Assembly: GCF_052425735.1 (NCBI RefSeq)
Contig: NC_135759.1
Span: 30,814,001-30,878,000 of the forward strand
From: Oculina patagonica
Taxonomy: Eukaryota
Length of the DNA: 64,000 nucleotides
Direction of reading: 5' to 3'
Under the pieces are notes generated by a model that had not been told where the DNA came from, searched no databases, and saw nothing but the letters and a program-made list of their open reading frames with translations. A program made the position numbers and the translations under genes. This document shows positions 11,201 through 58,285 of this stretch, one piece after another. The stretch's first letter is position 1. Every line of letters starts with the position of its first letter.

Positions 11201-13889
11201 ACAACACAATCACTACAGTGACTGAATAACTCACCCTAATCTCAAATGTTGCTTTTCCAGTCTTTATTGATGCTACGATAATATACTGAACAAAAGCTAC
11301 GTTTGGGTACCTGTGGTATGCCATTAATGAATTCCGAAAATTCCTTGAAATAGCTAGAGTTCAGTAAAAACTTTAATTTCCGCTCTTTTTGTATAGACCT
11401 AGACAGGACAGGAAAGATTATTACATCGAGAACAGTATAATAACACTGATCAGGTCTACTTTTATCTATTAAAGGCTGATTAAAGATAGGCAGATTGCTT
11501 TTTGTAAAACTACCTTGGACCTTGCTTTTGTACACAAAGTACCAAGTACACTCACCTTAATTCTGGAATTGGCAGGAATCTATATTTCAAAGGGATCGGT
11601 ATGCTCGTCGGAGACCCATTTGAGTGTGGGTGAAACTTTCTTTGACCATAAAAAACAATTCTCTTGCCTGATTGGTCTAATCCGCCAATTATGGCGGAGA
11701 TTTTTATTTCTTCATGTCTAGCCCTTGACGAGCTGAAAATATTTGAACACCCCAAGTGAGATAAGAAATTCGCAATATAGACCTCATAAACGAAACGGCG
11801 AACATCCCCGTCTATTTCATATGCGTCTTAAAATTATTTCATATGCCCCTCCCTCCCCCTAACCCAGGGACCTTATGCTGTGGTGCGAAGCGAAAGAGAA
11901 CTCAATTAAGCGTTAAGCCGGATTACTGCCGATTATAAGCCTTTTTTATGTGTTACGTAATTATTACTTCAGTATTGGGTGGGTACAAAACAAAGACCGA
12001 AGACCTAAGACCCAAATGTGGACAGGAAAATGGTCTTGAACAGATATGTCTTTTTAAGGTATACAATCATACCCCCTAGCATATGAGACCTGATTAACCA
12101 CCCCTATAACTTTTGCAACTTTTTCCTCTTTCAATTTTAAAATTAAGTAAATATCTGACAACAACCCACACATTAAGAGCTGCAAATTAAGCTATAGTTT
12201 AGGGGTATACCCAAAATATAGGCGGAATGAGATGTTTTTTAATGTTGTATTTTTTTGGTTTTGTCACCTTTTGAATTGAAACAGTGACCTCCTCTGGGTC
12301 TGTTAGTATGATTTATGACATACCAGAAACAATACTTTTCAAATGGTATATTGTATGTGGTCTTTGGGTCCATAGTTACCGTTTTACAAAAATGTGGTAT
12401 TTCCCATGGGAGTGAAAGGGTAAAGGGGGGTTATGTACAAAACAAAGACCCTGGTCAAACGTCCGGTCGAGAGTCATGTCCGAGACTCTTTCATTCCAGA
12501 CGATTCTGACGGGGTCTTCGTTTTGTACTTTTGGTGGGGCTAGGTACAAAATATAGACTCTAGTAAATTTGATGACAATGTCTGATTTTTATTTCCAGCG
12601 ATTTAAAGGCCTTTTTTGTTGTTTGTGTTTTTATTAATATTCTGAAGTAATCTAGAAAGTTCGTATTTGATAAAAATATTTCTGAGCAATTAAATTATTT
12701 TTTAAAATTTGAATATCAGTGAAGAGGAACAGAATTCTTTGTTATTGTAGTCGTTGGATGACTGATTCGATAACATACTTGTTTATTGAATTCAATATTT
12801 TTAAACGAATCATCTTAATCTCCACGACTAGACGCTACTTTGTGATTACGACAAGTCACGACTGCACTAGAGTGCCCCTGGGAACAAATTATTTGCATCC
12901 CTGTGGAATAAAACCGGATATAGGTGTTAGACACTGCAGACAAATCAATCTTCAAACTTAAGTGCGTTGCTACAACAGCCTGTATCGACTGAAGGACTAC
13001 GTTGCGTCCATCTATCCATTGCGAACAAAAACAGTGCTAGTCACAAGACGAATCGTGCAGAGGTAGGAAATATTACTATTCGTAACTTCACCCTTACCTT
13101 TCCTATATTTGTATTTTGTCCAGGGTTTGTTATAAAACTCACGCATTACGACATCACTGCCACCCGTACGTGATTGCGCTCACTGCAAAGCCGATTAAAA
13201 ATATTACTTATAATTTCCAGATAATTGCTATTTGCATCTCACTTTTAAGAGCGGAGAAGACGCCAACAATGTGAATAACTCGATTCCCTGGTACGAAATA
13301 CTCGAAGCACAGTCGCAAATTCAGTCTTGTGGAGACAAGTTTTTCGTGCAAGTTTTAGATTATATTTTCAGTCTGGAGTTTTCTGAAGCGTGAACTTTGA
13401 CGCATGTTAGTTGTCTTCGTCTCTTTTATCGACTAAGCTCTTGACTACCACCAGCCTAGATTCTATGACTTCTATCTAGTATCTGTGCAACTGATGCCAG
13501 TGGCTGCTTTTATTAAAACAAAAGCACACACATGCTTTGCTTTTCTAAAGAAACTTATCACGAGCATGATAATTTTTGGATTGCATTATGGGAATATTTC
13601 TTTTGTACATGAACAATAGATTTCCTTTCAGCGAACAATGATCGGACAGACCCAATTGTTAGTTGAATTACTGTCTGTGCAAAGAACCCTTCCAATCCAC
13701 GGAAAAGTTTTTCTAGAACAAATATCCGTTACAGGTTCTGATTGTGAAGTGATATTACAATAATTTTGAGTTTTTAACTTTTTGCACATTCTTTCTTTAA
13801 GCTGAAGTTTTCTGTATAAAGTTCAGGGGACATTTAAATGGATAAAAGCGAGCAAATATAAGTAGAGCAGACACCATTGTAAATGAATA

Positions 13890-14208
13890 CAGCTAATTCG
13901 AGAAAGGTTGTCGGAAAAAAAGCACAAAAGTGCACGCGATAAGACCGAAAGGTTTTATGGGTAGAAGTAGAACGATGGCGACATGACAGACACGAATTTT
14001 CAAGTTTTCTTTCTCTTCAGACATGTGGAATTAAGGTACGCTGGAAGAAGAATTTTCAAAACTGAAAACACGCGACAGTAAAAGTAAAGCTACAGAAAAA
14101 GGCCTCCTGAAAGAAAAAACAGAAACTTTATGTGCAATAATACAGCCTTGTACCTTGCGTCGCGTGCACTTTTGTGCCTTTTATCGACAACCTTTCTCGA
14201 ATTTGCTG
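13890..14208. mobile_element. Tc1/mariner-type MITE (TA TSD)
   Basis: TA|CAGCTAATTCGAGAAAGGTTGTCG ... CGACAACCTTTCTCGAATTTGCTG|TA; imperfect TIRs of about 50 bp. Confidence 0.75.
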
Positions 14209-14875
14209 TATATAGTAGTAGACGTTGTCAACTCCATTTTATCAGTTGTCAGCAAAGTTTAATATTATTATCATTAATTGGATTAGGATATTTTGTGATA
14301 TCTTACAAAATATTTTAAAATCAAAATGGTGGTCCTCACCGGATTACTGTATTCACAAAAACAAATCTAATCATTGGTTTATTTTTTATTGTACGTTTTT
14401 TATAAAGGGGGGAAATGCAATTTGTTTTCATTTATAAGATTCGCTCATGCATGCATAACCTAAGAGATATCTCTGTTGCTAAGGGAATTACCTCGTTGCT
14501 ATGAACACTTATCCACCCCAACCTCACCCGGTCACCATGAGTCCAATAGTGTATTTTATTACTTGATATTCTAAACAAAACCGCTTACATAAAATCTCTT
14601 ATTCTTAGACGTATCAGCGATGTCACCTATCAAAAGGAAAATAATAATACGTGAACCAGGACTGAAGAAGACAGCTATTGAGAAGAATTAACAATTTGTG
14701 AGCGTCTATAAAAAGTGTATGGAAAAGAAGAAAGCTGAAGAAACGTAGAGTTAAAGCTTAAAAAAAAAACAACAGGTTCATTTACTCAATTCGAACTGTG
14801 CACCCCAGCAGTGTGAATCGTAGTCTCTGGTACAAACATTTTCCATTGGATTCTATCAAGAAGAGACTAGAGAAG

Positions 14876-15952
14876 ATGGTTTTTATGACGAACTTGTGCG
14901 AAGACGTGCAAGCGCCATTCCCTACTTCGGTGGTGACTGCAGTTGTTTCAATGGTGCTCTGTTTTATTACCGTGCCAGGCAATATTCTAATTTGTATCGC
15001 CATTATAAAGGATCCATACCATGAGTTATCTACTTCATTCAACTACTTTGTTCTCCAGTTGGCTTTGAGTGATGTCATCGTAGGTATCTTCACCGAACCT
15101 GCTTTTGTCGTGTGGCATATTCGCGAGGCTCTTAACTATGGTGTCATGGAAACAATATGGATTGTCCACCTTACGTATTTCATCTCATGCACAGCCTCAC
15201 TTCTTAGTCTTTCAGCTCTCACTCTGGATAGACATCTAGAAGTTGTTTCTATCAGAAGGAAACTCTCCTCTTGTGCTGTAGTTCGTATCTCTGGGATGAT
15301 ATGGCTTTTATCGCTGACAATACCTTTTATTTACTTCGCAACCGGATTTTACCTGTTCGCGTTTCTATTCGCCAACACTGCTGTTATTACAACGTTTGTA
15401 ATCGTAACATTTTCGTACTGTCGAATTTATTTCAAACTAAGAGCCCAAGTGGCCAGATGGCGTTCATTTTGTCAGGACCACGTTGCGTCGAAAGCTATGG
15501 CCATGGAAAAGCAAGTAACAAGAGCATTTAACTTGATATTAATGTTCTTTATTTTGTGTTTGATACCATCGTGCATCATGATATACATTATAAATCTATG
15601 TGACAAGTGTGACTGCATATTCATCCACTGGCTGCGAGATCTACAGTTTCTTCTGACGTTGGTCAATTGCTCGATTAACCAGTTCTTATACGCTTGGAGA
15701 ATGCCTAACTTCCGAAAAGCCATAGCTGCTATTATTTGCGGTAAATCAGCAGTTGTGAATCGCTGTGCAATTCCACTATCTCCTATCAAAATAACGATAT
15801 CATGTAATCAGAGGGGCAGAATAGAAACACTGGAGTTTGCATCCCCCAAAAAGTACATGTACATTACCGATACCCCGGATGATACAGGTGACAATAATGA
15901 CAATAACAATATGCAACAACCTCAAAATGCTATTCACATAACGAGTGTATAG
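14876..15952 (+). CDS. Orphan class A GPCR, paralog 3, 358 aa from the first ATG
   Basis: 7TM with GN, LALSD, DRH, CLIP, NQFLY. The ORF-track start at 14798 is GTG; the first in-frame ATG is at 14876 (alternative 14885) and aligns with the paralog N-termini (NLCEDV / NLCDDV / HLCEEI). Confidence 0.92.
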   Translation: MVFMTNLCEDVQAPFPTSVVTAVVSMVLCFITVPGNILICIAIIKDPYHELSTSFNYFVLQLALSDVIVGIFTEPAFVVWHIREALNYGVMETIWIVHLTYFISCTASLLSLSALTLDRHLEVVSIRRKLSSCAVVRISGMIWLLSLTIPFIYFATGFYLFAFLFANTAVITTFVIVTFSYCRIYFKLRAQVARWRSFCQDHVASKAMAMEKQVTRAFNLILMFFILCLIPSCIMIYIINLCDKCDCIFIHWLRDLQFLLTLVNCSINQFLYAWRMPNFRKAIAAIICGKSAVVNRCAIPLSPIKITISCNQRGRIETLEFASPKKYMYITDTPDDTGDNNDNNNMQQPQNAIHITSV

Positions 15953-16079
15953 AACGCTTAAAAATGGTTTTCATTCTGCCAAAGACAGACGAATCATAAC
16001 AAATAGAAGATTAGTCTCTTCCAGTTTTAGACTTAATGGAGACCTCTAAAGGCAGTGCCTCCAACTTACCTCTGTGGTC

Positions 16080-16390
16080 ATACTTACCTGCCTGCCTGCC
16101 TACTTACCTACCACATCTGTCTGCCTCCAACCTCTGCCTGCCTTCCTACCTAACTACCTACCTGCCTGCCTGCCTGCCTACCTACCTAGGTACGCAGGCA
16201 GATGTGGGTAGGTAAGTATACCAACCTCTGCTTGCCTTCCTAACTACCTACCTGCCTACCAACCTACCTATCTACCTATAGCTACCTACCTACCTACCTA
16301 CCTACCTACCTACCTACCTACCTACCTACCTACCTACCTACCTACCTACCTACCTACCTAACCACCCACCCACATACCTACACACCCACC
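16080..16390. repeat. (CCTA)n/(CCTG)n compound microsatellite downstream of GPCR3
   Basis: Pure CCTA run at about 16282-16360 with degenerate flanks. Confidence 0.95.
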
Positions 16391-19300
16391 TTACTACCGA
16401 AGGTAAAGTACAAGATAAATAATATACCTAAATATCGAAAAGGCGTTAAGTAAAGAAAAAAAAAACAACTCTTTATGTTACACCATACCTGCATACAGCT
16501 GTTATAAAAATTACAGTTTTGATAAAATAAAGCACCACACTAGAAAATTCTACTGCAGTACTACGACGCCTTAAAACAAAAAAATTAAGATTTAAACTCC
16601 AGTTTCATGTATTTTTATGATTTACCTGTATGACCTTCCTTACATCAGTTATTTGGCTAACGAGTAGCGGTTGCACCTTAAGGACAGAATTTCTGCTGTC
16701 TGTCCGTGATTGTATACAATATATCTTATTGGTTCTCCAGCACAAACTACATACACTGGAATTGCCAACAGAGAGAAGTTAAGTGAAAACATGATCCTTG
16801 CAGTTGTGTCCCCTTCATACTCAGCATTTCGCAAATTAAGTTAAAACAAGAAAGGAAAAATTACAGCCTTCACAGTAAATCAACGATTGGAAGTCGAACG
16901 AAATTTATTTGGTAAATTGGATTGCAAACAATTTATTGATCCATATACCTTCGATTGTGCTACTATATTCCAATGCAGTTCAACTCAATAGCACCTCGAA
17001 ATATTCTTTGCAGAATTAAAAGTGTTCAGTTTTTTCGTCTTTTTCTTGTAAAATAATGTGATCAATTTACAAAAGCAAAAAGGTGTGGCTATAGAACCAA
17101 CCCATGGCCAGTCACCTGCCAAATCTAGCTGTAACTCAATACTGGGGTTATTAGTTTAAAAATGTGTCTCTAGACATGAAAAAAAAAAAAATACGCAAAA
17201 CACTATTTGTGTCACTGTGTATGCGCATTAAAACTACATATCTATGCTGTAAATTAAACGAATCCTATTATTGGGTTTATTCTGTCAGTAAGATCTTCAA
17301 AGAGGAACATGCTGATGTAAAGCAGTATCTTACTACATCATTACGACAAATAAAATTATATTTTGTTACGCGTAGCACCGCCACATTGGATAACAACAAA
17401 AGATTCTACTGATCTCTTTGTCTTCTCTTTCTCTTCTGATAGAAGAGTCGAGTTTGCTATGGAACATAACGGAAGCGTTTGACCACGGGGAGGCTAGTCT
17501 AGTTTCCAGGTGATTATAAAAGGTAAAGGGGAACCTCAGGAACCTAAAATACGAAGAGAAACTAAGGAAAAACAGGTTTAAAATAATCAAAGTTCTTATC
17601 AGCTGACCTCGACGAAGACCGTCATACATTCAGTTTAGCGTCAAAAGGTTTTATTGAAGAGGGATTTTTTTGTTAACTGGCCACCTTTCATCGTGCAATG
17701 CGTTATTAAACCACCTTGGAAGAAAATTTCTGGAACCTTTTGTTTTTAGAAAGCTTTTGCTACTGTTTTTACACTGTTTTTTAGCTAGCTTTTACATGTA
17801 CGCCGGCAAACCACCATTTTGAGTTCTCGCTGTCTATGTTCACTGCCTCATCCCGGAATCTAAACTGCCCTGAGAGTCCTGATAGCGCCCAATCCATTAT
17901 TAATTTATATCCATGGTGCTTTACAAAAAAATATTAAAAAAGACAAAGAAACGACAATGAGAAAAAAGATAAAAAATAGTTAAAGGTCTTAACATTAAAA
18001 AAGAATTATTACCAAGATAAGAATGAACCGATATTTTTGTTGCACACCAGATCATCCTTTCTTATGTACCTTATCACATCGCCTTATAGTCGAAAAGCAG
18101 AATTTGATCATAATTTGAATCATCGTCACTTAAGATTAAAACGTTTTTGTGGGTGTGTACCAATCTTTTGTATGACCGCCAAAGAAATCTGGTTGTGTTT
18201 AAGAAACGAGCTAACCAGATTTTTATAAATCTTTGGTTCAAAGGGCATCTTGTGGCGTACTTTGTAAATTCCCTTTCATTACACCGTTCTACATTTGCCA
18301 AAATGGTCTCTCTTCTCATACACTAAACAATCTGTTTCTGTAAAGAAACCAAGAGAATTACGTCTTTAAAATTTAATCAGGTGCCTCTATAGCACTGATT
18401 TGGACACAGGAAGAAGAGTAAAAACGGCTCAGTTTCAACCTTCTCAGTTTTTGTGCCTAGGGCCTAGGCCGCCTAGCCCCTAGGAATATTGATCGAACCA
18501 CTTTGTGATGGAAGATATTCTTGTTAACAATAGAATTGTCATCGATCCAATCAGAACAGAGCATTTCGTCATTGCGTCAGCGATCGTCGACCCGCGTCAT
18601 GTAATCTCTGCGTAAGTGGAAAAAGACAGGTGGAAGACGATCCCCAACACTCAGAAGAGGGGAAAGATGGTTCGTACACTGCCAAGATCTACAGAGCTTT
18701 AACCAATAGGACCCGCAGAAGAAGTAATAAGCTGATTGATGGAATTGAAGATTGCCGCGGAGAGCATTGCTTGTGCGGTCTCCGTCTTTCAAGTTTTCGC
18801 TATTTTCTACATTTAATTCTCATTTTTTTTTTCTATATCTCTAAAAAAGTTGTGAACATATTAACTTATTAATAAGATTAAGAAAAAGTTATAGCCGATA
18901 ACGGGGCCGACTTGTGTTTTTACTTTCAGGTGCCGTGTTTTAAAAATATTCAGTACTTCAAAAAGGAAATTGAGTTTTTTTTATTGAAGGTTAAATGGAA
19001 ATGAAATCGTGAGTCGAGTTCAAGGGACGATTAGCATTTCGCTGCTTCACGCTGCTCAACACACTGCTTCACTCGTACTGAGTTACTGACTTCTCCCAAG
19101 GCCACAATCGTTGAGATGCCGCAAATCGCGAAGTTTGGGATTTGTAGTAAATTTTGTGCGATATTTTTCCACGTCCCTCCCGCCGGCGTTGTTATTCTTT
19201 TTTTTTTTTGCTTTTCATCTCAGCTGTCGAGAAAGCCATTTCTGGCGTGTTATCTCACCAGTCCACACTCAGAAGGACGAGTGTAGGTCAACAAGGGCAT

Positions 19301-40900: not shown

Positions 40901-42588
40901 AGAATAATTTCTACAAAAACTGAAGTTGAAACCCTGCGAGAGTATTCGATATTTGCTGAGAAATGTGAAGCGATTCTAAATAATGTTTTGCTTTTGTTGT
41001 GGACGAATTCTCTTGGCTTCGGCGTACTATAAAATCCTCGACTCACGGGCACGGTTGTTCAAAAGACTAGATACCCGGCAGTCAAAATTTCATGAATAAT
41101 CAATACATTCAATATCCACAAAAATGATCATTGAAACCTAGCTCCCGAGAGTATTTCAGTATTTCAATTTTCGGTCGGAAATACCAAGCGAGTTTTTACA
41201 ATGTCAGTTTGGTTTTGCACAAATTGTACGAATTTTATGTGACTCACGGGCACGATTTTTCAAAGACTACATACCCGGCAGTCAAAAATCAGATCAACAG
41301 AACCTCAACGCTATTAGGCACACGTTGCGAACTGATCTGAGAGTGGTCTCCTCACTGAGGGGACAAATCCCCTGAATTTGAAAAAATCTACTTGAGTGAC
41401 TATATATAGAGGAACGCTTTGTATTTCTATTTAACCGAGAGCTTCGTCGCTTCCAACGCTAAGCCGTTTAGCCCACAGAAGAACTTCGTCGCTTCCAACG
41501 CTGAGTTCGTTTTGGCGCGAAAAGCAACACCACGTGCCACCTTTGTCACGCCACTAAAGTGTCACACCGGAAGTTACATCGGTGGCGGACTTTCGTCACC
41601 GAACGCTCAAGCGTTTTGTAGCTATTTTGTACTACTTTGCCGAGGCAATTGTTGAGGCCTTAAGTTGGAAAATCGCTTGGTATTTCTACACCGACATCTC
41701 AGCAGGTTCAAATGGAAATTTTGATGGAAAAACGGGAAGCTTTTTTGACTGCCGGGTATGTAGTCTTTGAAAAATCGTGCCCGTGAGTCACATAAAGTTC
41801 GTACAATTTGTGCAAAACCAAACTGACATTGTAAAAACTCGCTTGGTATTTCCGACCGAAAATTGAAATACTGAAATACTCTCGGGAGCTAGGTTTCAAT
41901 GATCATTTTTGTGGATATTGAATGTATTGATTATTCATGAATTTTTGACTGCCGGGTATCTAGTCTTTTGAACAACCGTGCCCGTGAGTCGAGGATTTTA
42001 TAGTACGCCGAAGCCAAGAGAATTCGTCCACAACAAAAGCAAAACATTATTTAGAATCGCTTCGCATTTCTCAGCAAATATCGAATACTCTCGCAAGGTT
42101 TCAACTTCAGTTTTTGTAGAAATTATTCTATAAGAGTTGACACCGGAGTCAGAGTACGAATTTTTTCTAAGTGTCGAAGAATCAAGATTTTGTAGTATGC
42201 CCAAGCTCGAAAATTTCCTCAAACACAAAGCCAAAACTATAATTGAAATCGCTTGGCATTTCTAAGCAAAGATCTATAGTTTTGAGGAGGATTGGATTGG
42301 TTTTTCCGTGGAAATTCTAGAATAATTTCAGACTGCCGGGTATGTAGTATTTTGAAAACACTTCCCGGCTGCCGGGTATCTAGACACAATGAATAAACAA
42401 ACATCCTAGCTACTCACATTTGCAAGATTGGAGTCCGTCAGAAGACCTCGCTTGGAGAGCAAATTAACCAGCTTTGTCTTTATCTCTAATGGAAGCAGAC
42501 CTAACGAAGTTTCGTGGTCTGGCAACTGACAAGCCACTGCTCTCAGGCAATGATTTTGTAAACTACTTACCACTGCAAAAACCGCCAT
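28936..42588 (-). CDS. AMN1: Protein AMN1 homolog (cysteine-containing leucine-rich repeats), 5 exons, 259 aa
   Basis: Exons 42588-42418, 31683-31539, 30158-29941, 29774-29718, 29124-28936; all GT-AG, phases 0,1,0,0, total 780 nt. The protein (LLSKRGLLTDSNLANVLHP..., CPRINILIFDGCPRVTDRSR..., KQLSWTVY*) matches recalled vertebrate AMN1 end to end, including the terminal WTVY. Confidence 0.92.
32179..32414. mobile_element. MITE-like element with TGCTCG internal repeats
   Basis: Imperfect TIRs TAGGAGTCATGAATGGTC / GACCATTTGATACCCCTA; about 10 copies of TGCTCG. Confidence 0.5.
33624..34136. mobile_element. PIF/Harbinger-type MITE, right end truncated
   Basis: TTA|GGGCCTGTTTAC start, the same terminus as 60439-61009; many palindromic TAGGGTAACCCTA subrepeats; matching right terminus missing. 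Confidence 0.65.
35340..36722. repeat. Copy A of a ~1.4-kb diverged direct repeat in AMN1 intron 1
   Basis: Colinear with 37353-38230 + 39124-39153 + 40209-40460; both copies end in TAGGACGACCAAAGGGTAAACTATAAATCGGCCACGCCCGATTAA. Confidence 0.85.
38233..39121. mobile_element. Non-autonomous Tc1/mariner/pogo-type element (TA TSD)
   Basis: TA|CCGTAAAAACCCGCAGATAAGCCGCACC ... GGTGCGGCTTATCCGCGGGTGTTTACGG|TA; the empty site is visible in copy A. Confidence 0.88.
39154..40206. mobile_element. Non-autonomous Tc1/mariner/pogo-type element (TA TSD)
   Basis: TA|CAGTATGGGGCCCAGTTCTCGGCC ... GGCCGAGAACTGGGCCCCATACTG|TA, a perfect 24-bp TIR; internal CCAGTTCTCGGCC repeats; empty site in copy A. Confidence 0.9.
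40639..42391. mobile_element. Foldback/MULE-like element: 650-bp TIRs, 453-bp spacer, 9-bp TSD
   Basis: Arms 40639-41288 and 41742-42391 are reverse complements with about 4 mismatches seen; AATAAACAA at 40630-40638 and 42392-42400; four TA(G/C)ATACCCGGCAG subrepeats per arm. Confidence 0.93.
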
Positions 42589-42704
42589 ATTTTCGTATCG
42601 CGATGGGTGGCAACCGCTGGCATTTTTCTGTAACACGCGGGCTCAAGAAGAAGAACAAAGTGGGCGCCAGTCTCCTCGCTCTCTCTCCTCACACGTTGTC
42701 CAAG
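42589..42704. promoter_or_regulatory. Bidirectional promoter / 5' UTR region shared by AMN1 and DERA
   Basis: 116 bp between divergent ATGs; CpG-enriched; ATCGCGAT palindrome; YY1-like AATATGGCGG over the AMN1 ATG. TSSs are not known. Confidence 0.75.
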
Positions 42705-45700
42705 ATGTCTTCCCATTTAGTTCGTAATCCTGGAGTTCCGCTCGATTTAGAGTGGGTAGGCAGGTCACGAGTTAACCTTCCTGCAGTTAAACGACGTGCA
42801 GACACGCTAAAAACCCGCCGATCGATAAAGAAGCAATGGCAAGCGGCTTGGCTTCTCCGAGCGGTGACTTGCATAGATCTAACCACCCTCTCAGGGGATG
42901 ACACTGCGACCAATGTTGCTCGGCTGTGCTTCAAGGCACAAAACCCCGTGAGACAAGACTTGCTGGAAAGCATGGGTATGGCCGACAAGGGTATAACCAC
43001 AGGTGCCGTTTGTGTTTACTCATCGCGCGTTCCGGACGCTGTCAAGACTCTCAAGAATATTGAGTCCAATGTTCCAGTTGCTTCAGTGGCTGCAGGATTC
43101 CCAGCAGGTATAAAACGAACCTAACTCTGATCGATGATTTTATTTTGTTGCCACTACCCCGCCCCCTTCAACTCCAAACCCCTCCTCATCGATATGTTTT
43201 AGTACTTGTAGAGGCCGTCATGTCAGGGGTGTAAAAAATTTACATGTTGGGGCTGTATTTAGAGGTGGAGCCTTTGTGGGGCCCATGGCACCTAATACGT
43301 GGAAAGCTCTTGTATTGCATTTCAAGCAAGTTTTAGAGCAGTAGTGATTGTTAGTGCTTTTAAGAAAGTTTTGCATCCTGGTTGTAACCTCCCTCACACC
43401 CCCTGTCCTCCTGGTTGTATTAAGTGTGTTTGTGAGCAGAGTGTCTCTCCAGGCCAGTGCTTAATGCTAGTTTCTGTATCAAAGTAACTAGGAATATTGC
43501 ACTTGAACAAAATTTATTATTTTGTTCTTGGAGGAATTCAATAAGTACAGTATAATTTACAGGAATTCAATAAGTACAGAATAATTTTCAGGATTAGTAG
43601 TCACAAGAAATATAATGTGGGGTTTTATTACAGGTCAGACTCCTCTCAAGCAAAGACTGGAGGAAATAGAGACTGCCGTGGCTTCAGGTGCCACAGAAAT
43701 CGACATTGTAATCAGCAGAGCATATGTACTGGAGGGAAACTGGGAAGCACTTTATAATGAAGTGCAGGCAATGCGCAAAGCTTGTGGAGAAGCTCATCTT
43801 AAGACAATTATTGCCACAGGTACTATTATTTTTTACTTGTATGTTCAACCTTCCAAGTTAAGACCATTTAAGTCGCCATGGCAACTAAAATTTTGGAGCA
43901 GGCATTTAAATTAGAACTGAAGTCGCCAGCCTGGCGACTAATAATTGAGAAGAAGGATTGAAAGTGTGAGCTTAATTTAGCGCCTAAAATTTTTCACTTG
44001 CGACCAAACTTGAACAGAAGGTGGCCAAATGGCCACTAAGGAAAAAAATAATTTTGGAGGGTTGATGTTGTCTGAGGTCATCAGTCTACAAATGAAACAG
44101 ATAGACTGAAAAAGGGGTATTGCAGTCATTGTACCAGTATGCCAAACTTGTCCCTTTTTTAATTTTAGATTCTTGTGCCCAGAACAGGGTTGTCATTTAA
44201 GTTGAAGTTATAACCCATATCATTTTGCTCTGTTTGCAAGTGTAACTTCAGTTGACATCTTCACCTGTAACATCAAGTGAACTCAGCTGTAACAGGTGTT
44301 ACAGGTTACAGTGCCCTGCAAGATGTCACATACATGTACACTATAACTAAATCACTTTACCTTACCCCTTTGTAAATACTTTTCGACTGACGACATTAAT
44401 ACAATGTCATTAGTGGACGGTGAGCAAGAGTTTTAGTTACCTTTTGGCAGTGGTGTATGAAAAGCCATTTACAAGTACTGGTATAACCAGTTGGCCTTCT
44501 GTTGATCAATAGAAAACACCTGATTAGCTAACCATTCATATTGCAAGTTGCCAATTGTCAGCCACTGGGTTGTTTCACATTGGGTTCACATGCATTTTAT
44601 TTTGTCATACAGGTGAACTTGGCTCTTTAACCAATGTATACAAAGCTAGTTTGGTTTCGATGATGGCTGGCTCAGATTTCATTAAAACGTCAACTGGTAA
44701 AGAGTCGGTAAATGCAACATTCCCAGTTGCATTGGTTATGGTGCGGGCAGTCAGGGATTACTATCAGGTATTACATGTACCTGTAGTGTATGGGCATTTT
44801 GCCATGAGAGAAATTATACAAGTGTTGACCATCCAATAAAGAACCTAATATCTTTCTAGCTGCAACTGTTAAATCCATGTTGGGCACTCTTATTATTCAG
44901 TTTTATCTGCGTCGTTATGCTGCCTAGAAGAAGAGATTTGCTAAACATTGGGCTAAAACTTAAAAGGTTAAAACCAACTTGGTCCAAAAGTTTTAAATGG
45001 GATGACTTTTCAATGTTAGCTTGACATCATCATCAGGTCAAAGATGAATATAATTGGGCACAAATACAAATGTACGGTAAAAAGAATTCCTAAGAGAAAC
45101 AAATTATTTGGTAAAGCTATGATGATGATGATGCAATAAGGTATTTGTATGCAGAGTTATGTTGCCATTTTGTAAATTATGAACCCATAACTTTTCTGGA
45201 TTTTGTAAACTGATCTATTCATTTTTGATTCTTTTTGTTTCTTTTGTTAAGATTTTTCTCAGAAAAAATTGAGTCAAATACATGTATAAATAAAATACAG
45301 TAAGAATAACTTAAAGAGTGTCATATCCAAAGAGTGGCTCTTTATCCCCTACTTCCAGATCGAATTGGAATTTAAAAGTGCTGGTTTTTGTGGAGGGAGG
45401 AAAACTGGAGAACCCAAACAAAAACCCTCAGAGCAAGGTTGAGATCAACAACAAACTCAACCCAGGTTTTGAACCTGAGCTCTCTCACCACTTTGTGATC
45501 CCAGCTCCCCCCAAACAAATTTATTTATCTCTCTGTTTTTCTAATTTACATGTTTAATGCTTTTCATAAAAAAAGTTAAGAAACCTTATTTGCTTCCTGT
45601 TTCAGCAAACTGGTCACAAAGTAGGCTTTAAGCCAGCAGGTGGGATCCGTAGTGCCAAAGATTCTTTAACATGGCTCTCCATGATGAAGGAAGAACTTGG

Positions 45701-48115: not shown

Positions 48116-48844
48116 TCTAATAAGATCTATTTGTCCACAGTATTACCGATAATAAGCTATTGTGATACGTGCTTTTGCCCTTTGGGCAGCACTAACAAAA
48201 AGTCTCTTGAACGCCTACAACGACGAGCTGCGAAAATAGTATACGGTTTTAAACCTGACATAGCCACGGAAACAATACTCGAACATGTACTCGAGAACCT
48301 ACGTTGGCCGCCTCTTACAAAAACTATGGAAAAGCACTGTGCACTGTTAGTTAACGAGTGCTTGGTCGGAGACGTTCCCTCATATTTTAAAGACTATTTC
48401 CTGTTACGTAGCCAGGGCGACAAGCAACATGTTTTTAATCAGAGATGCACTATAGATCGTCTTTTACTGACATTATACTTCCAAACATTCATTTAGATGT
48501 CGCTAAAAAGTCTTTTTATTATCATGGTGCATTCATTTTTAATTGTCTTCCAACGATTATTAAGACTATGCAGCCAAAGGAACGTTTTCAAGCTATCTCT
48601 GCTTTTTATTCTTAGGTTATTTTTAGAACATTTTTAATTCGAAATTTACTTATTTTTATGAGAACACTAGTACTTCTTTTAAACTTTTTAACTTTTTTTA
48701 GCATTTTAGCGGTATCTTTTTAAAGTAGATTTTATAGATAGATAGATATTTTATACATACTCTCTTTTACTTTAAATTTGTTTTATTCTCACAGGGCCCC
48801 CGTTGATACCAGTCCTGCGACTGAAGGGGTCAGGTCACCCTGTT

Positions 48845-50187: not shown

Positions 50188-50193
<6 letters not shown>
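48909..50193. mobile_element. TGT...ACA DNA element inserted in a (TA)n microsatellite
   Basis: TGTGGCGTAAAAAAACGG / CCGTTTTTTTACACAACA TIRs; (TA)n on both sides (48848-48908, 50194-50229); about 9 palindromic GTAAAAAAGCAGCTTTTTTAC subterminal repeats at 49870-50172. Confidence 0.8.
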
Positions 50194-50232
<39 letters not shown>

Positions 50233-50344
50233 GTACGTGTACGTGGCGGTTCGATGGCGGTGCATGTGAGCGACATTTCAGATAATTATTTTATAATTCA
50301 CATTCGCGCCTCTTGTATGCCGTAGATTGACTTCACACGCAATC

Positions 50345-51994
50345 ATGACCAACACTACTTTCCTCAACATTTTGGCCGATGTGGTTGGTTGGGGTTATTT
50401 CTCGTGTTGGATAGTATCCTTTTTCCCACAGATATACGAAAACTGGAGACGCAAATGTGTGGTGGGTTTTTCGTTGGATACGTTGGCCGTTTATTTCCTC
50501 AGCTATGTGATGTACATGATTTACAATTTGACGGTCTTCTTCGACCCGAAACTTATCCCTGGAAATTCGAATGAAGACAACCCTGTAAAGCTGACGGATG
50601 TCGTGTTCGCTGTCGTAGCGTTTCTTTGTACAATTGTCCTTGTAATACAGTGCTTAATTTATGATCGGGGATCGCAGACAATTCATCGAAGCACTGTCGT
50701 TGTTTGTATTGGTTGTTTGCTTACTCTGGCTGTCCTAACTGTTCTTCGCTGTTTTGGTGTCGGCTCGTGGTTTTTGGTCCTCCAGTACTGTGGATACGTA
50801 AAACTGGTTGTGTCATTTGGAACGGTAAGTTATTCACCGAAGTTAACGTGAATTACGTGCGTTCAATAACGCGTTAAACATGCATAAAATTAACGTGAAT
50901 GTATCGTTAATTTTCCTATAATAAGGTATACTTTTTTAACCTTTGTACACTGAGTAGTGAACTTGTGTTTATAAGAATCTCTTTTATAATAATGTTGAGG
51001 GTAAGAAAGGGTAAAGTCTTATTAGAACAAGCTAAGAACATAACCAAGGCTGATATTTGGGTAAGAACTAAATTTGTTTCCCCATCATTTATTCTGAAAA
51101 TGCAAAATAATACACGTACAGAATGAATCAACCTATGGCCATCTTTTAATTATTGGGAAGGCATTTTTTGCAGGTTGAATTTCGTAGTCTACTTCGCACT
51201 CCGGTTAGCCCGAATAACACTCCGATTAGCCTAAATTAGCTTAGGTTGCTTGGGTTGACCTTATTGTTAGGGTTTTTGCAACTTCAACTCAAATAAACGG
51301 GTTGTTTCAACCTGCAACCTGCAAAAAATACCTGTCGACCTTTATTTAAATCTGACTCGGCTGGAACCATCAATTCACGTGACAGTGACATGGACGCCAG
51401 AGTCGGAGAGTTTCACTGCAAGAGGAACATTTTAAGGACGGCTTCCGGCTCAAATCGTCGATATAGAGGGTCCTGAGGGGGGTGAGGGGGAGGGAGGGGG
51501 GGGGGGTTGGAATAAATCCCATTTTCCCAGCCCAGTTAAAAAAATGAACGTTGAAGTGAGTTTTTGAGTTAACTGAAAAATGTTTAATACATTAATAAAA
51601 TACTGATTAAACCAAAATATACTTTTTCATTACATGTATTTAGTATTATCCTCAAGTTTGGCTAAATTTCAAGCGGAAGTCGACAGTTGGATTTCATATT
51701 GGTGGAGTGCTCCTTGATTTTGGAGGTGGAGTTCTTAGCTTTTTACAAATGGATCTGTACTGCTTCATTGAACACAGTAACGATCAACTGACTGGCAACA
51801 TTCCCAAGATGGCCCTGGCTGTAGTTTCACTTTTATTCAACATCATCCTTATCTTGCAGCATTATGTTCTCTATTTTGGAAATGAACACAAGGCCAGTGA
51901 AAATGAACCATTGCTTGGAGGCGCGCACCGGAAGACTAACTTTTATACCGTAGACGTCAACGCTGAAGAAAGAGATTTTCTGCCGACGAGTTAG
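50345..51994 (+). CDS. Cystinosin-like PQ-loop transporter, copy 1 (2 exons seen, 276 aa)
   Basis: Exons 50345-50824 and 51644-51994, phase 0. Motifs GWGYF..W.VSFFPQIYENWRRK.VVGFS.D, YPQVWLNFKRKSTVG, LLDFGGG, ILQHYVLY; dileucine ENEPLL. A possible acceptor at 50324-50325 means upstream exons cannot be excluded. Confidence 0.88.
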
Positions 51995-52194
51995 ACTTAT
52001 GATTTTCTGATGATCAGTTTGCCGAGTTTCAGTGGAATGTGAGTGCTAGAGAGGTTAAAAGAAACGACCTTGCTGCTATGGAAACTGCTTAATTAACAAC
52101 ACAATAAGTGTATACCTCCTCCCTCCCCCTTTCCCGGATGTTTTTCTACTTGCTTTTGGTGGCGGCACCCACAAGAGTCCTTATCATGTTCCCC

Positions 52195-52708
52195 AGGGCT
52201 GGGTTGTTAGAAAGCCGATTTCTGTTACACTAACTCAGGATTAAAAGTTGATCAAGAATTCAATTTCTTTTGTATGACAAAAGTGTTTTTATTGCTTATG
52301 TTTTGTAGAATTTAAGATTAGTGGAGGACAGAAAATACCATCAGTAAACAGAAAACCAGGGCCGTAACTAGCAAGAGGCAAGACAAGGCACTTGCCTCGT
52401 CTAGATTTCAACCCAAACTTCAAAATTAAATGTGTTTAGTTGGGAAAATAATCCCCAGTTCAACAAGATTGAGTTTTTTTTTCAAGAAATACCTTATAAA
52501 AAATGTTTAAGAAAGAGTTTCAGAGCTTCTAGATTTCAAAACATTTTCTGGACGGCATGCCTACAGAACGTTAACCTCGCAAAATCTTGCCTCGTCTATG
52601 CTAAAGGTCTTGTTACGGCCCTGAAAACCTCACTGAAAAGTTAAAAAACTGAAATCAAAGTTCACGCTAATTCTGGATTAGCTTAATCATGCTTTGAACA
52701 ACCCGGCC
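52195..52708. mobile_element. Harbinger-like MITE with a nested 5-bp-TSD element at 52357-52623
   Basis: Outer ends GGGCTGGGTTGTTAGAAAGC / GCTTTGAACAACCCGGCC; inner element AAAAC|CAGGGCCGTAAC ... GTTACGGCCCTG|AAAAC. Confidence 0.7.
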
Positions 52709-53546
52709 AAGGGCTTTAAAACTGTCACTTCACCACTGCAGCTGTCACTCCATTTTGAGGTTTCAAAAAGGACAATCGTGTTCCTGTAAATTAGGCAAAG
52801 ACACACGGATCAATTTGTATTTTAAAACAATTTTTTAAAGATACAGTTGAGCCTCTAATACGGACACCGAAGAAACGGAGCAAAGTGTCCGTATTAGAGA
52901 GGTGTCCGTAAGGAGAGGTTCGACTGTACAATAACAATGGGTTTTAAAACATAACCGAAGGTATTTCTTCCTTTTGATAAATATATAAAAGGATTACTCA
53001 GGCAGGTGATGAGAATATTAGAAAAGATCGTCAATAAAGCTTTTTTTGTGTTAAGACATTTGCCACAAAGTTTCCAGAACAAACGTTAAAAAATCTGTAA
53101 CGAGAAATAATTAAAATTTAAGCTTTGGACAACAGGCTCCTTACATTGAGTTATTTACTGAGCAGTCACTGAAAATGCGCCAGATGTTGTAAGCGAGTCT
53201 AGACTTTTTCCTATGTAAGCTATTAACAGGACAATTTAATTTACAACTGCATCTACATCTACTGTCCATAAGTATTAAAGTCGGTAAAACTCTTACGACA
53301 TCACACCGCCAGAAAACTATTAAAAGTCATAAGAATTTAAAACTTGCTAAAACACTACGCGATTATAGAAGATTTACGAATGAATGAATGAATAACTTTA
53401 TTTCCCATACTTAAAAAACGTTGGTTTAAAAGGAGTCTAAAGAACTAAAGGTAACTATCCCCTAGGGGAGGCATTTCCAGTCAGCGATAATTCTTGGATT
53501 CTTTTGAGCTCAAGACGGATTTGAAAACAGAATACTTATATGTCTC

Positions 53547-53956
53547 NNNNNNNNNNNNNNNNNNNNNNNNNNNNNNNNNNNNNNNNNNNNNNNNNNNNNN
53601 NNNNNNNNNNNNNNNNNNNNNNNNNNNNNNNNNNNNNNNNNNNNNNNNNNNNNNNNNNNNNNNNNNNNNNNNNNNNNNNNNNNNNNNNNNNNNNNNNNNN
53701 NNNNNNNNNNNNNNNNNNNNNNNNNNNNNNNNNNNNNNNNNNNNNNNNNNNNNNNNNNNNNNNNNNNNNNNNNNNNNNNNNNNNNNNNNNNNNNNNNNNN
53801 NNNNNNNNNNNNNNNNNNNNNNNNNNNNNNNNNNNNNNNNNNNNNNNNNNNNNNNNNNNNNNNNNNNNNNNNNNNNNNNNNNNNNNNNNNNNNNNNNNNN
53901 NNNNNNNNNNNNNNNNNNNNNNNNNNNNNNNNNNNNNNNNNNNNNNNNNNNNNNNN
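53547..53956. other. Assembly gap (410 N)
   Basis: Run of N. Confidence 1.
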
Positions 53957-54593
53957 CGTGACGAGCACAATGAACAGCCGCATAGAGGCTAGAAATTTGA
54001 TTTTTTTTTTAGTTTAACACTCGGTCAATCGAGAAATTTTCATTGGTCAAAATCTGACAATAAAGAGAACAGTTTTTAAGGAGCTTTCTCACGGAGGGCG
54101 TCTTGAAAATCCTAACCTTGATTTTTAACATTAAAAATCTGCAATCCCGTTCAAACTTCCCGAATCTTAATAATCCTTGTCATTTTTGGCTTATTATTAC
54201 CTCTTTAATGGTTTTCTCTCTTTATCTTAGTAAACATTTGTTCTGAGGTAATTTCGTACATCTATATACCTTGCGTGACCAGGAGCCTGTCAGTGACAGC
54301 TCCAGCTGAGGAAACCCCTGCTGCGGCCAAATAATATAAATAATAGGGTTCTTATTTCCAAACTCGGAGCGCAAATGAAATTTATAAAAGCGTGAAATTT
54401 TTGGTCTGATATCATCCAGACTTCATCAGTCAATGAGGCGTGGTTTTTTCAAGATGAATGTTAAGAAGTCATTTCAAAGCCTCGGGGGAGTTTAATAAAA
54501 TTCTGTCATAAATTGGAGCTAAATTAAAACTAAAATTATTTTTAGGTTACGTTCGCGGCTTTTGTATACCGCAGTTTGTCTTCACACACAATC

Positions 54594-57500
54594 ATGGCCA
54601 ACACGGCTTTTCTCGTCATTTTGGCCGATGTGGCTGGCTGGGGTTATTTCTCATGTTGGATAGTATCCTTTTTCCCACAGATATACGAAAACTGGAGACG
54701 AAAATGTGTGGTGGGCTTTTCGTTCGATTCGTTAGCCTATCTTCTCCTCAGTTATGTGATGTACATGATTTACAATTTGACGGTCTTCTTCGACCCGAAA
54801 CTTCTCCTTGGAAATTCGAACGAAGACAACCCTGTAAAGCTGACGGATGTCGTGTTTGTTATCGTAGCGTTTATCTTTACAAATGTCCAGGGAATACAGT
54901 GCTTGAGGTACGACCGAGGATCGCAGACAATTCATCGAAGCACTGTCGTTGTTTGTATCTGTTGTTTGCTTGCTCTGGCTGTCCTCACTGTTCTTCGCTG
55001 TTTTGGGGTCGGCTCGTGGCTTTTGGTCCTCCAGTACTGTGGATACGTGAAAATGGTTTCTTCATTCGGAACGGTAAGTTATTCATCGAGGTTCTTTTAC
55101 CGTTTTCACCAGAGAAGTAAATACACCGTAACCTAGCCTGCGTAGCTAGCGGGATAAGCGCGGCTCGAGAAAAATCGCGGGCAAAGCCCTTGTGCGTGAG
55201 CGGCGCAGACGCAATTCCCTCGCGGCTTCGCAGCTCGACTCCGCCGTTAACCGTAAGCATAAGCAAAGCGCTCACTCGCGAATCCCGCCAGCTACGCAGG
55301 CTAACTGTTACCCGGCCTTGGTCAAATTGAGACCTCTCATTTTCAACCTTTGTTCACTGAGTCATGAATTTTTGAGTCACGAATTTTTGTTTGTAAGAGT
55401 TTAATTTATCTCCCCATCACATTTATTGTGAAAATGCAAATACACAAACGGAATGAATCAACCTTCCGTGTGACTACTCCAACCAAGGCCATCTGACAAA
55501 ATTTTGTGCAATTTGATAAATGAAAACCTCGGACATTAAAAATAGATTTATTACAAATTATCAATCTAAGCAAGCTGCACACTACAAAAGCAATAAATTT
55601 ATAACCTTTTTATTATTTTGACACTCAAACAGTATTGCTCAATTTGCGGGGTAAAAACCCGCACATAAGAATCTCATTTTTGTGGGGGCAAAGCCGCCAC
55701 ATTGTTAAGAACCTGTTACCCTCTAAGAACGTCTTTAGCGTAAAATCTGGAAATAGGTTCTTATTTCCTAAAATATATTAAAAATATTTACGTTTCAAGA
55801 AATAAGGTAAGTCGATATTCTGGATCCTCTTTGGAGTCACCTTGGAGACTTATCTCTCCAGTTGCAATGTAAATCAATGTTGAAAATCATAAAATATTAT
55901 TGATAAAATCACATAAATAGAAATAAAATGGTATGCAAATTTCATGGAAGGAAAAGGCTGAATACCATTAAAAAAATCTATAAGCAACGATGTAAATTTC
56001 TCTTCAGAAAATAGCCAAGAACTGTAATACAACTCGGCTGGAACCAGCAATTCACGTGGCAGTGATTAACATTTTACATGTAACTGCGTTTCGGGGAGTT
56101 TCATCATTGTTCATTGCAATAGGAAAATTTTAAGGACGCCTTCAGTGTGGCTTGCGGCTCAAATTGTCGGTATACTGCCAGCCTCAGTCAACAAATAGAT
56201 GCTTACATGCATGGAATGTCACAGGTAGCCAAAACTTTGGAAACCATGTCTATTGTTTTATCATTCGTACATTACATTCTCATGTTGGCTTTGTTCTATG
56301 AGTGAAAATTAACATATTTCTAAAATCGCTCGGACCTTTCCCGGGGTATCCAATCGAACAAGATCGAACCAAAAATCAATCGAACCCAATCGTCACCAAT
56401 CGTTCGATTGGGTTCGGTAATCGAACAAAATCGAACATCTATTTTGCTGTGAGTTCGATTTTCGAACCAATCGAACCAATCGAACATAATCGAACACAAT
56501 CGAACACAATCGGGTTCGATTTTGTTCGGAATCTTTCTCTCAGTTGATAAGTAAATCACGCAGGACTAATCAAAATCGACTTTTATTGAATGAAATAAAA
56601 ATAAAAACGCCCAAATATCGAACTGAATGTCAATGTCAAGTAAAATATATTTGGTAGAAGAGAACAAAACGACGGTAAAACTGAACTGAAATGCACTATT
56701 GTTTACATTTCTATATTAGAAGGAAGGATATGGTTTCTGCCATGATTTTCACCTTTACACTCAAACAGAAGTTGCACCATTTCATTCACTGCAACACAGG
56801 CAGTTGTGTTCAATATGTGAAGAATCATTACTAGTATCCAAAACGCTGCCGCCATCAGTCTGTCCAAGCCCTCAAGGGCGGCCAAAAGCGACGTTAACAG
56901 GAGAAGAGCAATTTCCAGCATGACAACAATTACATTGGAGGAAGTGCTTAAAACATGGATGACAAAAATAACAAGTGAACAAGTAAAACAATTTTTTTCT
57001 TAAGATCGAAATCGTCGTAATAAGCAAAAAACTTGCATGCAAAATTGACTTTAGTTTCGGACGAGTACGTTGTTCGACTGCCCCAGCCGTGGCTCTTGAA
57101 ATCAATCGATGCAGAATTAACGTCGCGTCGCTGGTGTGCCCGTGGCTATTGTTGGCTATTGTGCAGACAATCGCCCTATCCTGGGGTATGGCGAATCACC
57201 AAAAAAGGATTAGGGGAACGGTGCACCGTACAATATGTACGCAGTATAAACAAACAGGAGTTCGGTAATCGAACGTTCGATTGAGTTCGATTGTTGGTTG
57301 TTCGGTAATCGAACGTTCGATTAAGTTCGATTGTTCACTGTTCGGTAATCGAACGTTCGATTGAGTTCGATTGACCAAATTTTATTGTGAGTTCGATTAT
57401 GTTCGATTACCGAACCCAATCGAACGATTGGTGTTCGATTGAGTTCGATTACCGAACGTTCGATTGGATACCCCGGGACCTTTACAAAGCGAAGCGTAAT

Positions 57501-58285
57501 GCCGCACCGGCAGGTATTTTTTGCAGGTTGCAGGTTGAAACAACACATTTATTCGAGTTGAAGTTGAAAAAACCCCCAATATAAAGGCTAACCGCGAGCA
57601 ACCGAAGCTAATTTAGGCGGCTAACCGGGTGCTAATTAAGGTAACCTGAGTGCTATACAGGCTAACCGAATGTGTCTAAAGCTTTGAAAATGTGTGGCAA
57701 ATGTGATGGTTAATGTGATTGACATTTAATACAAGAGACATAAAACGTTTGAAATTTGAAGTTTAGCTTATGTCGTTTTTACAAACTGCTTTCTTACTGG
57801 TAGAATTTCTAGCACATTAGGCAGGGGTACAAAAATAGGCCATTTTACATTTATTATACTGACCTCTCAGAGTGAGTTTGGTGAGTTACAACAGCTGACG
57901 CATGAACTGTTTGATTTTTTTCTCATATTTTTAGAATTATCCTCAATTGTGGCTTAATTTCAAGCGCAAGTCGACAGTCGGATTTCATATTGGTGGAGTG
58001 CTCCTTGACTTTGGAGGTGGAGTTCTTAGTTTGCTACAAATGGATCTGTACTGCTTCATTGAACACAGTAACGATCAACTGACTGGAAACATTCCCAAGA
58101 TGGCCCTGGCTGTAGTTTCACTTTTATTCGACATCATCCTTATCTTGCAGCATTATGTTCTCTATTTTGGAAATGAACACAAGGCCAGTGAAAAAGAATC
58201 ATTGCTTGGAGGCGCGAACCGGAAGGCTAACTTGTACACCGTAGACGTCAACGCTGAAGATAGAGATTTTCTGCCGACGAGTTAG
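54594..58285 (+). CDS. Cystinosin-like PQ-loop transporter, copy 2 (2 exons seen, 276 aa)
   Basis: Exons 54594-55073 and 57935-58285; same phase-0 intron position as copy 1; about 34 amino-acid differences from copy 1 by hand count; dileucine EKESLL. Confidence 0.88.
55134..55303. mobile_element. Palindromic MITE (TAGCCTGCGTAGC family)
   Basis: TIRs TAGCCTGCGTAGCTAGCGGGAT / ATCCCGCCAGCTACGCAGGCTA; decayed 9-bp TSD ACCGTAACC / ACTGTTACC. Confidence 0.8.
56340..57477. mobile_element. Non-autonomous DNA element with AATCGAAC subterminal arrays and 6-bp TSD
   Basis: ACCTTT|CCCGGGGTATCCAATCGAAC ... GTTCGATTGGATACCCCGGG|ACCTTT; perfect 20-bp TIR. Confidence 0.88.

Follow-up and report, generated by a model that had tools for sequence, protein, structure and literature searches.

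The window described here is a stretch of 64,000 nucleotides (nt) from the coral Oculina patagonica (RefSeq assembly GCF_052425735.1, contig NC_135759.1, positions 30,814,001 to 30,878,000 of the forward strand). Between positions 50345 and 58285 it carries two tandem genes for cystinosin-like proteins with PQ-loops, here called copy 1 and copy 2. The original prediction, made from the letters of the window, had proposed that both genes are intact and that the substrate pocket of their products has been rewired. The parts of the two genes, with transmembrane helices abbreviated as TM and residues equated with those of human cystinosin, are as follows.

50345 to 50824, plus strand: copy 1 exon 1, 160 codons, encoding TM1 to most of TM5 with the first PQ motif
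50492 to 50494, plus strand: codon of copy 1 Y50 (human N166)
50822 to 50824, plus strand: codon of copy 1 T160 (human K280), the final codon of exon 1
50825 to 51643, plus strand: copy 1 intron, 819 nt, GT..AG, phase 0, holding an interspersed repeat
51644 to 51994, plus strand: copy 1 exon 2, 116 codons and TAG, encoding the second PQ motif, TM6, TM7 and a tail with ENEPLL
51704 to 51706, plus strand: codon of copy 1 G181 (human N301)
51839 to 51841, plus strand: codon of copy 1 N226 (human D346)
53547 to 53956, no strand: assembly gap of 410 N, intergenic, between copy 1 and copy 2
54594 to 55073, plus strand: copy 2 exon 1, 160 codons, with L50 (human N166) and T160 (human K280)
55074 to 57934, plus strand: copy 2 intron, 2,861 nt, GT..AG, at the same codon position as in copy 1
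57935 to 58285, plus strand: copy 2 exon 2, 116 codons and TAG, with N161 (human Y281), G181 (human N301), D226 (human D346; 58130 to 58132) and a tail with EKESLL

Each copy encodes 276 residues in two exons joined across a single phase-0 GT-AG intron, with no internal stop codon. One Pfam PQ-loop repeat (PF04193) was found per exon in both copies at 45-71 bits against a cut-off of 22, with E-values of 6e-20 and 2e-12 for copy 1. The sole run of N in the window begins 1,552 nt past the copy 1 stop codon and its final N lies 637 nt upstream of the copy 2 ATG. The gap is thus intergenic and neither reading frame depends on its content, which bears out the prediction of two intact PQ-loop genes. 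The gap covers part of the upstream region of copy 2, and the spacing of the two genes in the assembly includes its 410 N.

When the exons were searched with phmmer against all PDB chains, exon 1 matched best to the human cystinosin structures 8dyp (E 5e-24) and 8dke (E 1e-23), and exon 2 to Arabidopsis cystinosin 7zk1 (E 1e-22) followed by the human protein (E 4e-17). Human and Arabidopsis cystinosin are the nearest solved relatives (E 1e-15 to 1e-24), with SemiSWEET reaching only E 0.34. The 8dke chain carries native human numbering, and the alignment to it reproduced every position of the residue map that had originally been drawn by hand; its sole indel is a four-residue gap in the TM2-TM3 loop, and there are none near the listed sites. 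The equivalents of W138, F142, D205, K273, N288, D305 and K335 are kept in both copies, as are the PQ hinges P144, Q145, P283 and Q284, and both the luminal-gate salt bridge D205-K335 and the proton/amine site D305 are present. Position N166 has become Y in copy 1 and L in copy 2, and Y281 is retained in copy 1 but has become N in copy 2. At three positions the copies agree, with T for K280, G for N301 and N for D332, and at D346 they part, copy 1 having N and copy 2 keeping D. The state of D346 and three changes common to the two copies, G169S, S298H and H211V, had not been listed in the prediction. The two-lysine carboxylate clamp of the solved proteins (human K273 and K280; plant K55 and K166) is therefore incomplete, with K273 kept and K280 lost.

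In the plant cystinosin the two carboxylates of cystine are salt-bridged to K55, which is functionally the human K273, and to K166 (human K280), and one amine of cystine pairs with D191 (human D305) near W24 (human W138) (Loebel et al. 2022, PMC9385667). Cystine analogues without the second carboxylate are not transported by the plant protein, K166A and even K166R are inactive, and K273A, K280A and D305A abolish the currents of the human protein (PMC9385667). D232 (human D346) contacts D191 and links both gates, and the second clamp lysine is found on TM2 in plants and on TM5 in human (PMC9385667). Since K280 is replaced in both window copies, and since human K280A and plant K166A and K166R are dead, canonical cystine binding is unlikely.

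The pocket changes are not peculiar to these two genes; they mark a whole hexacorallian clade that includes non-symbiotic species. Close relatives with 55-86% identity share the signature T/S280, F166, S169, G301, H298 and N332 and are found in the stony corals Porites, Montipora, several Acropora species and Orbicella, in the azooxanthellate deep-sea Desmophyllum pertusum, and in the anemones Actinia tenebrosa and Nematostella vectensis. Clade members carry the NCBI label 'cystinosin homolog', and search scores fall sharply from the clade to ordinary cystinosins. The family sequences were obtained from a word-indexed profile search together with an exhaustive hidden Markov model search of 1.84 billion representatives. 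These family searches gave no octocoral or medusozoan clade member, though many matches bear no taxon name, and as far as the searches show the clade is confined to Hexacorallia.

We aligned 208 family sequences and read the columns through copy 1; 195 of the sequences lie outside the clade. At K280 the lysine is kept in 190 of these 195, and every clade member has T or S. N166 is N in 185 and G169 is G in 188 of the sequences outside the clade, positions at which the clade has F, Y or L and S, respectively. At D346, D is found in 179 of the 195; the clade mostly has N, but copy 2 and the Acropora-type protein P0041 have D. N301 is N in 137, G in 15 and A in 8 outside the clade and G within it. 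D332 is D in 90 and N in 85 of the 195, the clade has N, and so does Arabidopsis cystinosin, which is validated as a cystine carrier. On these counts D332N was ruled out as a meaningful change and N301G was ruled out as diagnostic by itself. As to whether the substitutions also occur in validated cystinosins, D332N does so in the Arabidopsis protein, and the lysine at K280 is present in both the human and the plant protein. The proposal that the pocket changes bar canonical cystine carriage likewise survives in part, drawing its weight from K280, which is essential in the human and plant proteins, with none from D332N and little from N301G taken alone. It had further been stated that N166, K280 and N301 line the cystine site. 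For K280 this is upheld (PMC9385667). No accessible paper describing a contact of N166 or N301 with cystine turned up in our literature searches, and for these two a place in the site is supported by their conservation.

A scan for sites that are at least 80% conserved in the rest of the family and altered throughout the clade gave fourteen: S154C, L158F, N166F, G169S, Y191I/V, N204T, H211V, S234H, S270G, K280T/S, W297F, S298H, W326N and F349L. The histidine of S298H is invariant within the clade. The 'cystinosin homolog' P0007 of Montipora foliosa also has N at K273 and, if its gene model is correct, would be without both clamp lysines.

As predicted, the two genes are true paralogs within the cystinosin family. 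A separate canonical CTNS orthologue was looked for and found on another chromosome (contig C14, ~18925743-18930993; loci L017 and L011), and the window genes are therefore extra paralogs and not the organism's cystinosin. The TM core of this orthologue was reconstructed from seven exons, one of which is a 26-nt mini-exon encoding VYLNWKRQ, and the protein has N166, G169, F170, K273, K280, Y281, N301, D305, D332 and D346 as well as a YEVI tyrosine motif in its tail. With human cystinosin (CTNS/SLC66A4; 8DKE, 8DYP) and the C14 orthologue, the window copies share a seven-helix fold with two PQ-loops, ~34-40% identity over the TM core, and W138, F142, D205, K273, N288, D305 and K335. Since those residues are conserved, the gating and proton-coupling scheme is probably the same as in human cystinosin. 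Unlike both canonical proteins, the window copies lack an N-terminal luminal domain, with only ~10 residues preceding TM1, and in their tail an ExxPLL motif takes the place of the GYDQL or YxxPhi signal. They have one intron, at another codon, where the canonical TM core has six, and they differ by K280T, N166Y/L, G169S, S298H, H211V and N301G in both copies and D346N in copy 1. Arabidopsis cystinosin (7ZK1), a validated short-form cystine/H+ symporter, resembles the window copies in its length (277 residues), in having no luminal domain and in its N at D332, but it keeps K55, K166 and D232, whereas the coral clade is without the K166/K280 equivalent and most of its members are without the D232/D346 equivalent.

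The superposition of AlphaFold models on cystinosin structures that had been suggested at the outset was run with the Porites clade member P0040, which stands in for the window proteins. Its model is confident across the seven helices, and most of residues 1-240 score above 90 in the predicted local distance difference test (pLDDT). The root-mean-square deviation from human cystinosin 8dke was 1.9 A over 237 columns, and the superposition on Arabidopsis 7zk1 reached a template modelling score of 0.87 normalised to the target. Over the human and plant cystinosins the deviation ranged from 1.8 to 2.2 A, with 1.9-2.2 A for 8dke and 7zk1, the one exception being the human crystal structure 8dyp at 3.2 A, and the SWEETs and KDEL receptors followed far behind. 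As modelled, the clade thus keeps the seven-helix PQ-loop fold of cystinosin.

A maximum-likelihood tree (LG+C20, 105 rows) gave the clade 98% support in the Shimodaira-Hasegawa-like approximate likelihood ratio test (SH-aLRT) and a long stem (0.62). Sister to the clade is a second short 'cystinosin homolog' of Actinia tenebrosa, P0055 (95% SH-aLRT), and the two together are not nested among the metazoan canonical cystinosins. P0055 is also a short form and shares the TGNIPK and NPVKLTDVVFA motifs with the clade, but unlike the clade it keeps K280, N166 and G169, so that it looks like an intermediate form; a search of the Oculina genome did not find a paralog of this type. In an approximately unbiased (AU) test, uniting the clade with the Oculina canonical gene, as expected from a cnidarian-specific duplication, was not rejected (p 0.47). 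A quick tree grouped the clade weakly (64%) with unnamed short proteins. Transfer from, or deep kinship with, short protist forms was considered on this account, and a cnidarian-specific duplication of canonical CTNS is also compatible with the data by the AU test. The single intron of the clade at a non-canonical codon would be consistent with a retroposed gene that later gained an intron.

When the entire assembly was searched at the DNA level, exactly three cystinosin-like copies were found, all on one chromosome-scale contig, and no haplotig twins of them. Copy 3 lies ~22 kb past the end of the window (G000:C2:30899694-30902700; locus L018, 3695-4174 and 6288-6701), has the same two-exon structure as copies 1 and 2, and encodes 297 residues. 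Residues 46-297 are identical to the NCBI entry 'hypothetical protein ACROYT_G006954 [Oculina patagonica]'; this model begins at Met46 and is thus without TM1, whereas the full protein is obtained from an in-frame ATG located 45 codons further upstream. In a tree of exon 1, the branch of copy 3 is very short and lies close to the scleractinian consensus, and copies 1 and 2, together with a copy-1-like protein of another coral (P0001), form a derived subclade with 96% support. At the N166 position copies 1 and 2 have replaced an otherwise invariant F by Y and L, respectively. In TM3 the stretch SFQGIQ has become IVLVIQ in copy 1 and NVQGIQ in copy 2, and the two copies are unlike each other at Y281 and D346. 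They are the most derived clade members in the Oculina genome.

The two copies differ from copy 3 also at their C-terminus, where a TAG stands at the position of a TTG in copy 3 and removes a tail of 21 residues. In copy 3 (QESPV), in Porites and Acropora, and in a copy-3-like gene of another coral, this tail ends in S-x-V, which resembles a class I PDZ ligand. The copy-1-like gene of the same other coral has the same truncation, and the short form is therefore a conserved type and not an accident. An acidic dileucine-type motif is present ~10-15 residues past TM7 in all scleractinian members and in Actinia (ENEPLL, EKESLL, EQEPLL, EKHQLI). Signals of the type [DE]xxxL[LI] serve in adaptor-dependent sorting to endolysosomal membranes, and the ExxPLL-type signal in the tail probably sends these proteins to such membranes.

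Transcription was assessed by aligning Logan contigs from four runs, which are presumed to be RNA, to 50300-52400. In three of the four runs contigs skip exactly positions 50825-51643 (819 nt) with GT..AG ends, so spliced transcripts of the copy-1 gene type exist and the intron model is right. One RNA-like run of the same study contains 0.70 of the 31-mers of copy 2 exon 1, above any DNA run, which suggests that copy 2 is transcribed. Full-length intron-free open reading frames of clade members in other corals, on Logan contigs of 1.6-2.4 kb, point the same way.

We consider it somewhat probable, and hold with moderate confidence, that copies 1 and 2 are functional and arose by lineage-specific duplication inside a hexacorallian paralog clade of the cystinosin (LCT/SLC66A4) family that has kept transport and exchanged cystine for another substrate. 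Since all gating and coupling residues are kept, the proteins would cycle as proton-coupled alternating-access carriers. With the replacement of K280 by T or S, one arm of the two-lysine clamp for the two carboxylates of cystine would be lost. The neighbouring pocket would be remodelled by N166F/Y/L, G169S, N301G, S298H, H211V and a D346 position that is mostly N. The head-group site for one alpha-amino acid (K273, D305 and W138) would survive, and the distal site would become neutral, hydrophobic or histidine-lined. The likely cargo would then be a mono-carboxylate amino acid or a related small metabolite with an uncharged distal part, and the dileucine signal (ExxPLL) would direct the carrier to endolysosomal membranes.

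To our knowledge, no other member of the cystinosin subfamily has an assigned substrate. Outside the clade the binding site of cystinosin is near-invariant across eukaryotes, as the count at K280 among the sampled relatives illustrates. Since the engine is kept, the essential lysine is replaced and the copies are under purifying selection (see below), the clade may be regarded as a natural experiment in the change of PQ-loop specificity. This hexacorallian clade of cystinosin-like proteins with a rebuilt substrate site is unstudied and was annotated automatically. It is a concrete candidate for an unassigned lysosomal or symbiosome transport activity in corals, and its label as 'cystinosin homolog' would lead reconstructions of sulfur and thiol metabolism in corals astray.

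Several points weigh against a changed substrate in functional window copies. The change is read from residues alone, and N301 and D346 vary in other family members as well. S298H places a titratable base on the TM6 face of N301 and D305, and this base might stand in for K280 at lysosomal pH. The structural model is that of a Porites orthologue and not of the window's own proteins. The spliced contigs are ~5% off copy 1 and exactly match neither copy 2 nor copy 3; at this divergence they cannot be assigned to copy 1, and their source may be a different population or a closely related species.

The strongest alternative, which we regard as clearly less probable than a changed substrate, is that the proteins are still cystine/H+ exporters in which the histidine at S298, protonated in the acidic lumen, compensates together with K273 for the loss of K280. 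In that case the clade would represent a further cystinosin, either redundant or limited to certain tissues. Retention of K273, D305, W138, D205, K335, N288 and both PQ motifs would be expected in this case, and so would the invariance of S298H within the clade. Since the second clamp lysine lies on different helices in the plant and human proteins, the clamp can be rebuilt from another position (PMC9385667). However, the plant protein does not tolerate even the conservative change K166R (PMC9385667), K is kept by 190 of the 195 other family members, and N166, G169 and H211 have changed alongside K280. The genome has also retained a canonical CTNS, so the copies were not forced to keep the old function.

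A change of substrate could also take a more specific form, in which the copies work in the lysosome-derived symbiosome and serve the exchange of a sulfur or nitrogen metabolite between coral and alga. This role, raised in the original prediction as a testable idea, is a possible but speculative one, and by analogy is made more plausible by the non-canonical NPC2 of anthozoans; we nevertheless rate it as improbable. Oculina patagonica is facultatively symbiotic and has three copies, compared with one clade member found for Nematostella, and the dileucine signal fits an endolysosomal route. The non-canonical NPC2 is present as one copy in Nematostella and as several in symbiotic species, and the two cases are parallel in their anthozoan restriction, intron poverty, long branch and tandem duplication (PMC6548501). 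It is only this evolutionary pattern, that of an anthozoan-restricted, intron-poor, fast-evolving tandem paralog of a conserved lysosomal protein, that is alike, since NPC2 belongs to an unrelated family, is a soluble sterol binder and has been localised to the symbiosome by experiment (PMC6548501), whereas the cystinosin-like clade is known from its sequences. Clade members also occur in three non-symbiotic species, namely Nematostella, Actinia tenebrosa and the deep-sea Desmophyllum pertusum, and the clade therefore did not originate for symbiosis. The main text of a preprint on the Aiptasia symbiosome proteome does not mention cystinosin, and our literature searches found no paper linking cystinosin to corals or dealing with coral cystinosin paralogs. 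We give only slight credence to the fullest version of the idea, that hexacorals evolved a new proton-coupled PQ-loop transporter for a mono-carboxylate sulfur or nitrogen metabolite, whose tandemly expanded members, the two window genes among them, act on the symbiosome or phagolysosome membrane in host-symbiont nutrient exchange. If true, it would be the membrane-transporter counterpart of the non-canonical NPC2 story.

It is doubtful, at about the same low level, that the copies are decaying or non-transporting duplicates, either relaxed towards pseudogenes or left with a scaffolding or signalling role only. Between copies 1 and 2 there are 70 nucleotide differences over 831 coding nt and 34 amino acid differences over 276 residues (12%), corresponding to 0.18 synonymous substitutions per site (dS) and a ratio of non-synonymous to synonymous rates (dN/dS) of 0.37. 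This ratio is above the 0.25-0.27 obtained against copy 3, as relaxation would predict, but it is well below 1, and the two copies are under purifying selection. The nonsense change that removed the C-terminal tail from both, and the N of copy 1 at D346, could be read as decay, yet both frames and all four splice sites have stayed intact after a dS of 0.18, and another coral has preserved the short copy-1 type, with its stop at the same place. Neither copy was met as a database protein in our searches and exact copy-1 transcripts were not seen in the contigs. Against this, 70% of copy 2 exon 1 is covered by exact 31-mers in the RNA-like run, and every mechanistic residue outside the pocket has been kept.

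It is highly unlikely that the tandem pair is an assembly artefact, with two haplotypes of one gene flanking the gap, as the assembly gap between the copies might suggest, since the coding differences (dS 0.18) are accompanied by unlike introns (819 and 2,861 nt) and a patchy similarity outside the exons, and since the same kind of tandem cluster stands on a gapless contig of another coral; this explanation was ruled out. Beyond the exons, copies 1 and 2 resemble each other only in the ~60 nt that precede the ATG and in a few fragments of repeats. The gapless contig (L025; ENA ERZ25067872, ctg20992) carries a gene for deoxyribose-phosphate aldolase (DeoC/DERA), then a copy-1-like gene (10001-12480) and then a copy-3-like gene (13659-17950), both with the intron at the position seen in the window copies. 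The former has its stop at the same truncating position and the tail of the latter ends in ESRV, so that short-tailed and long-tailed types are found side by side across coral species. On the strength of the divergence, the intron lengths, the three copies without haplotigs and this synteny, the tandem cluster is genuine and predates the species.

An open frame resembling DeoC/DERA is also found in the window upstream of copy 1 (42474-43124, plus strand). Between it and copy 1 lies an open frame of 121 residues (48131-48496, plus strand) that loosely suggests a retroelement remnant. A fused model of 927 residues from Acropora cervicornis, named 'Deoxyribose-phosphate aldolase', clusters with the clade and implies an order of DERA followed by the cystinosin-like gene. 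The introns of copies 1 and 2 have an interspersed repeat in common, in opposite orientation (51196-51337 and 57508-57653). Positions 50868-50938 and 52288-52400 showed very high contig depth in all runs and are probably common repeats, and a (TA)n microsatellite is located at ~50190-50230, ~115 nt upstream of the copy 1 ATG.

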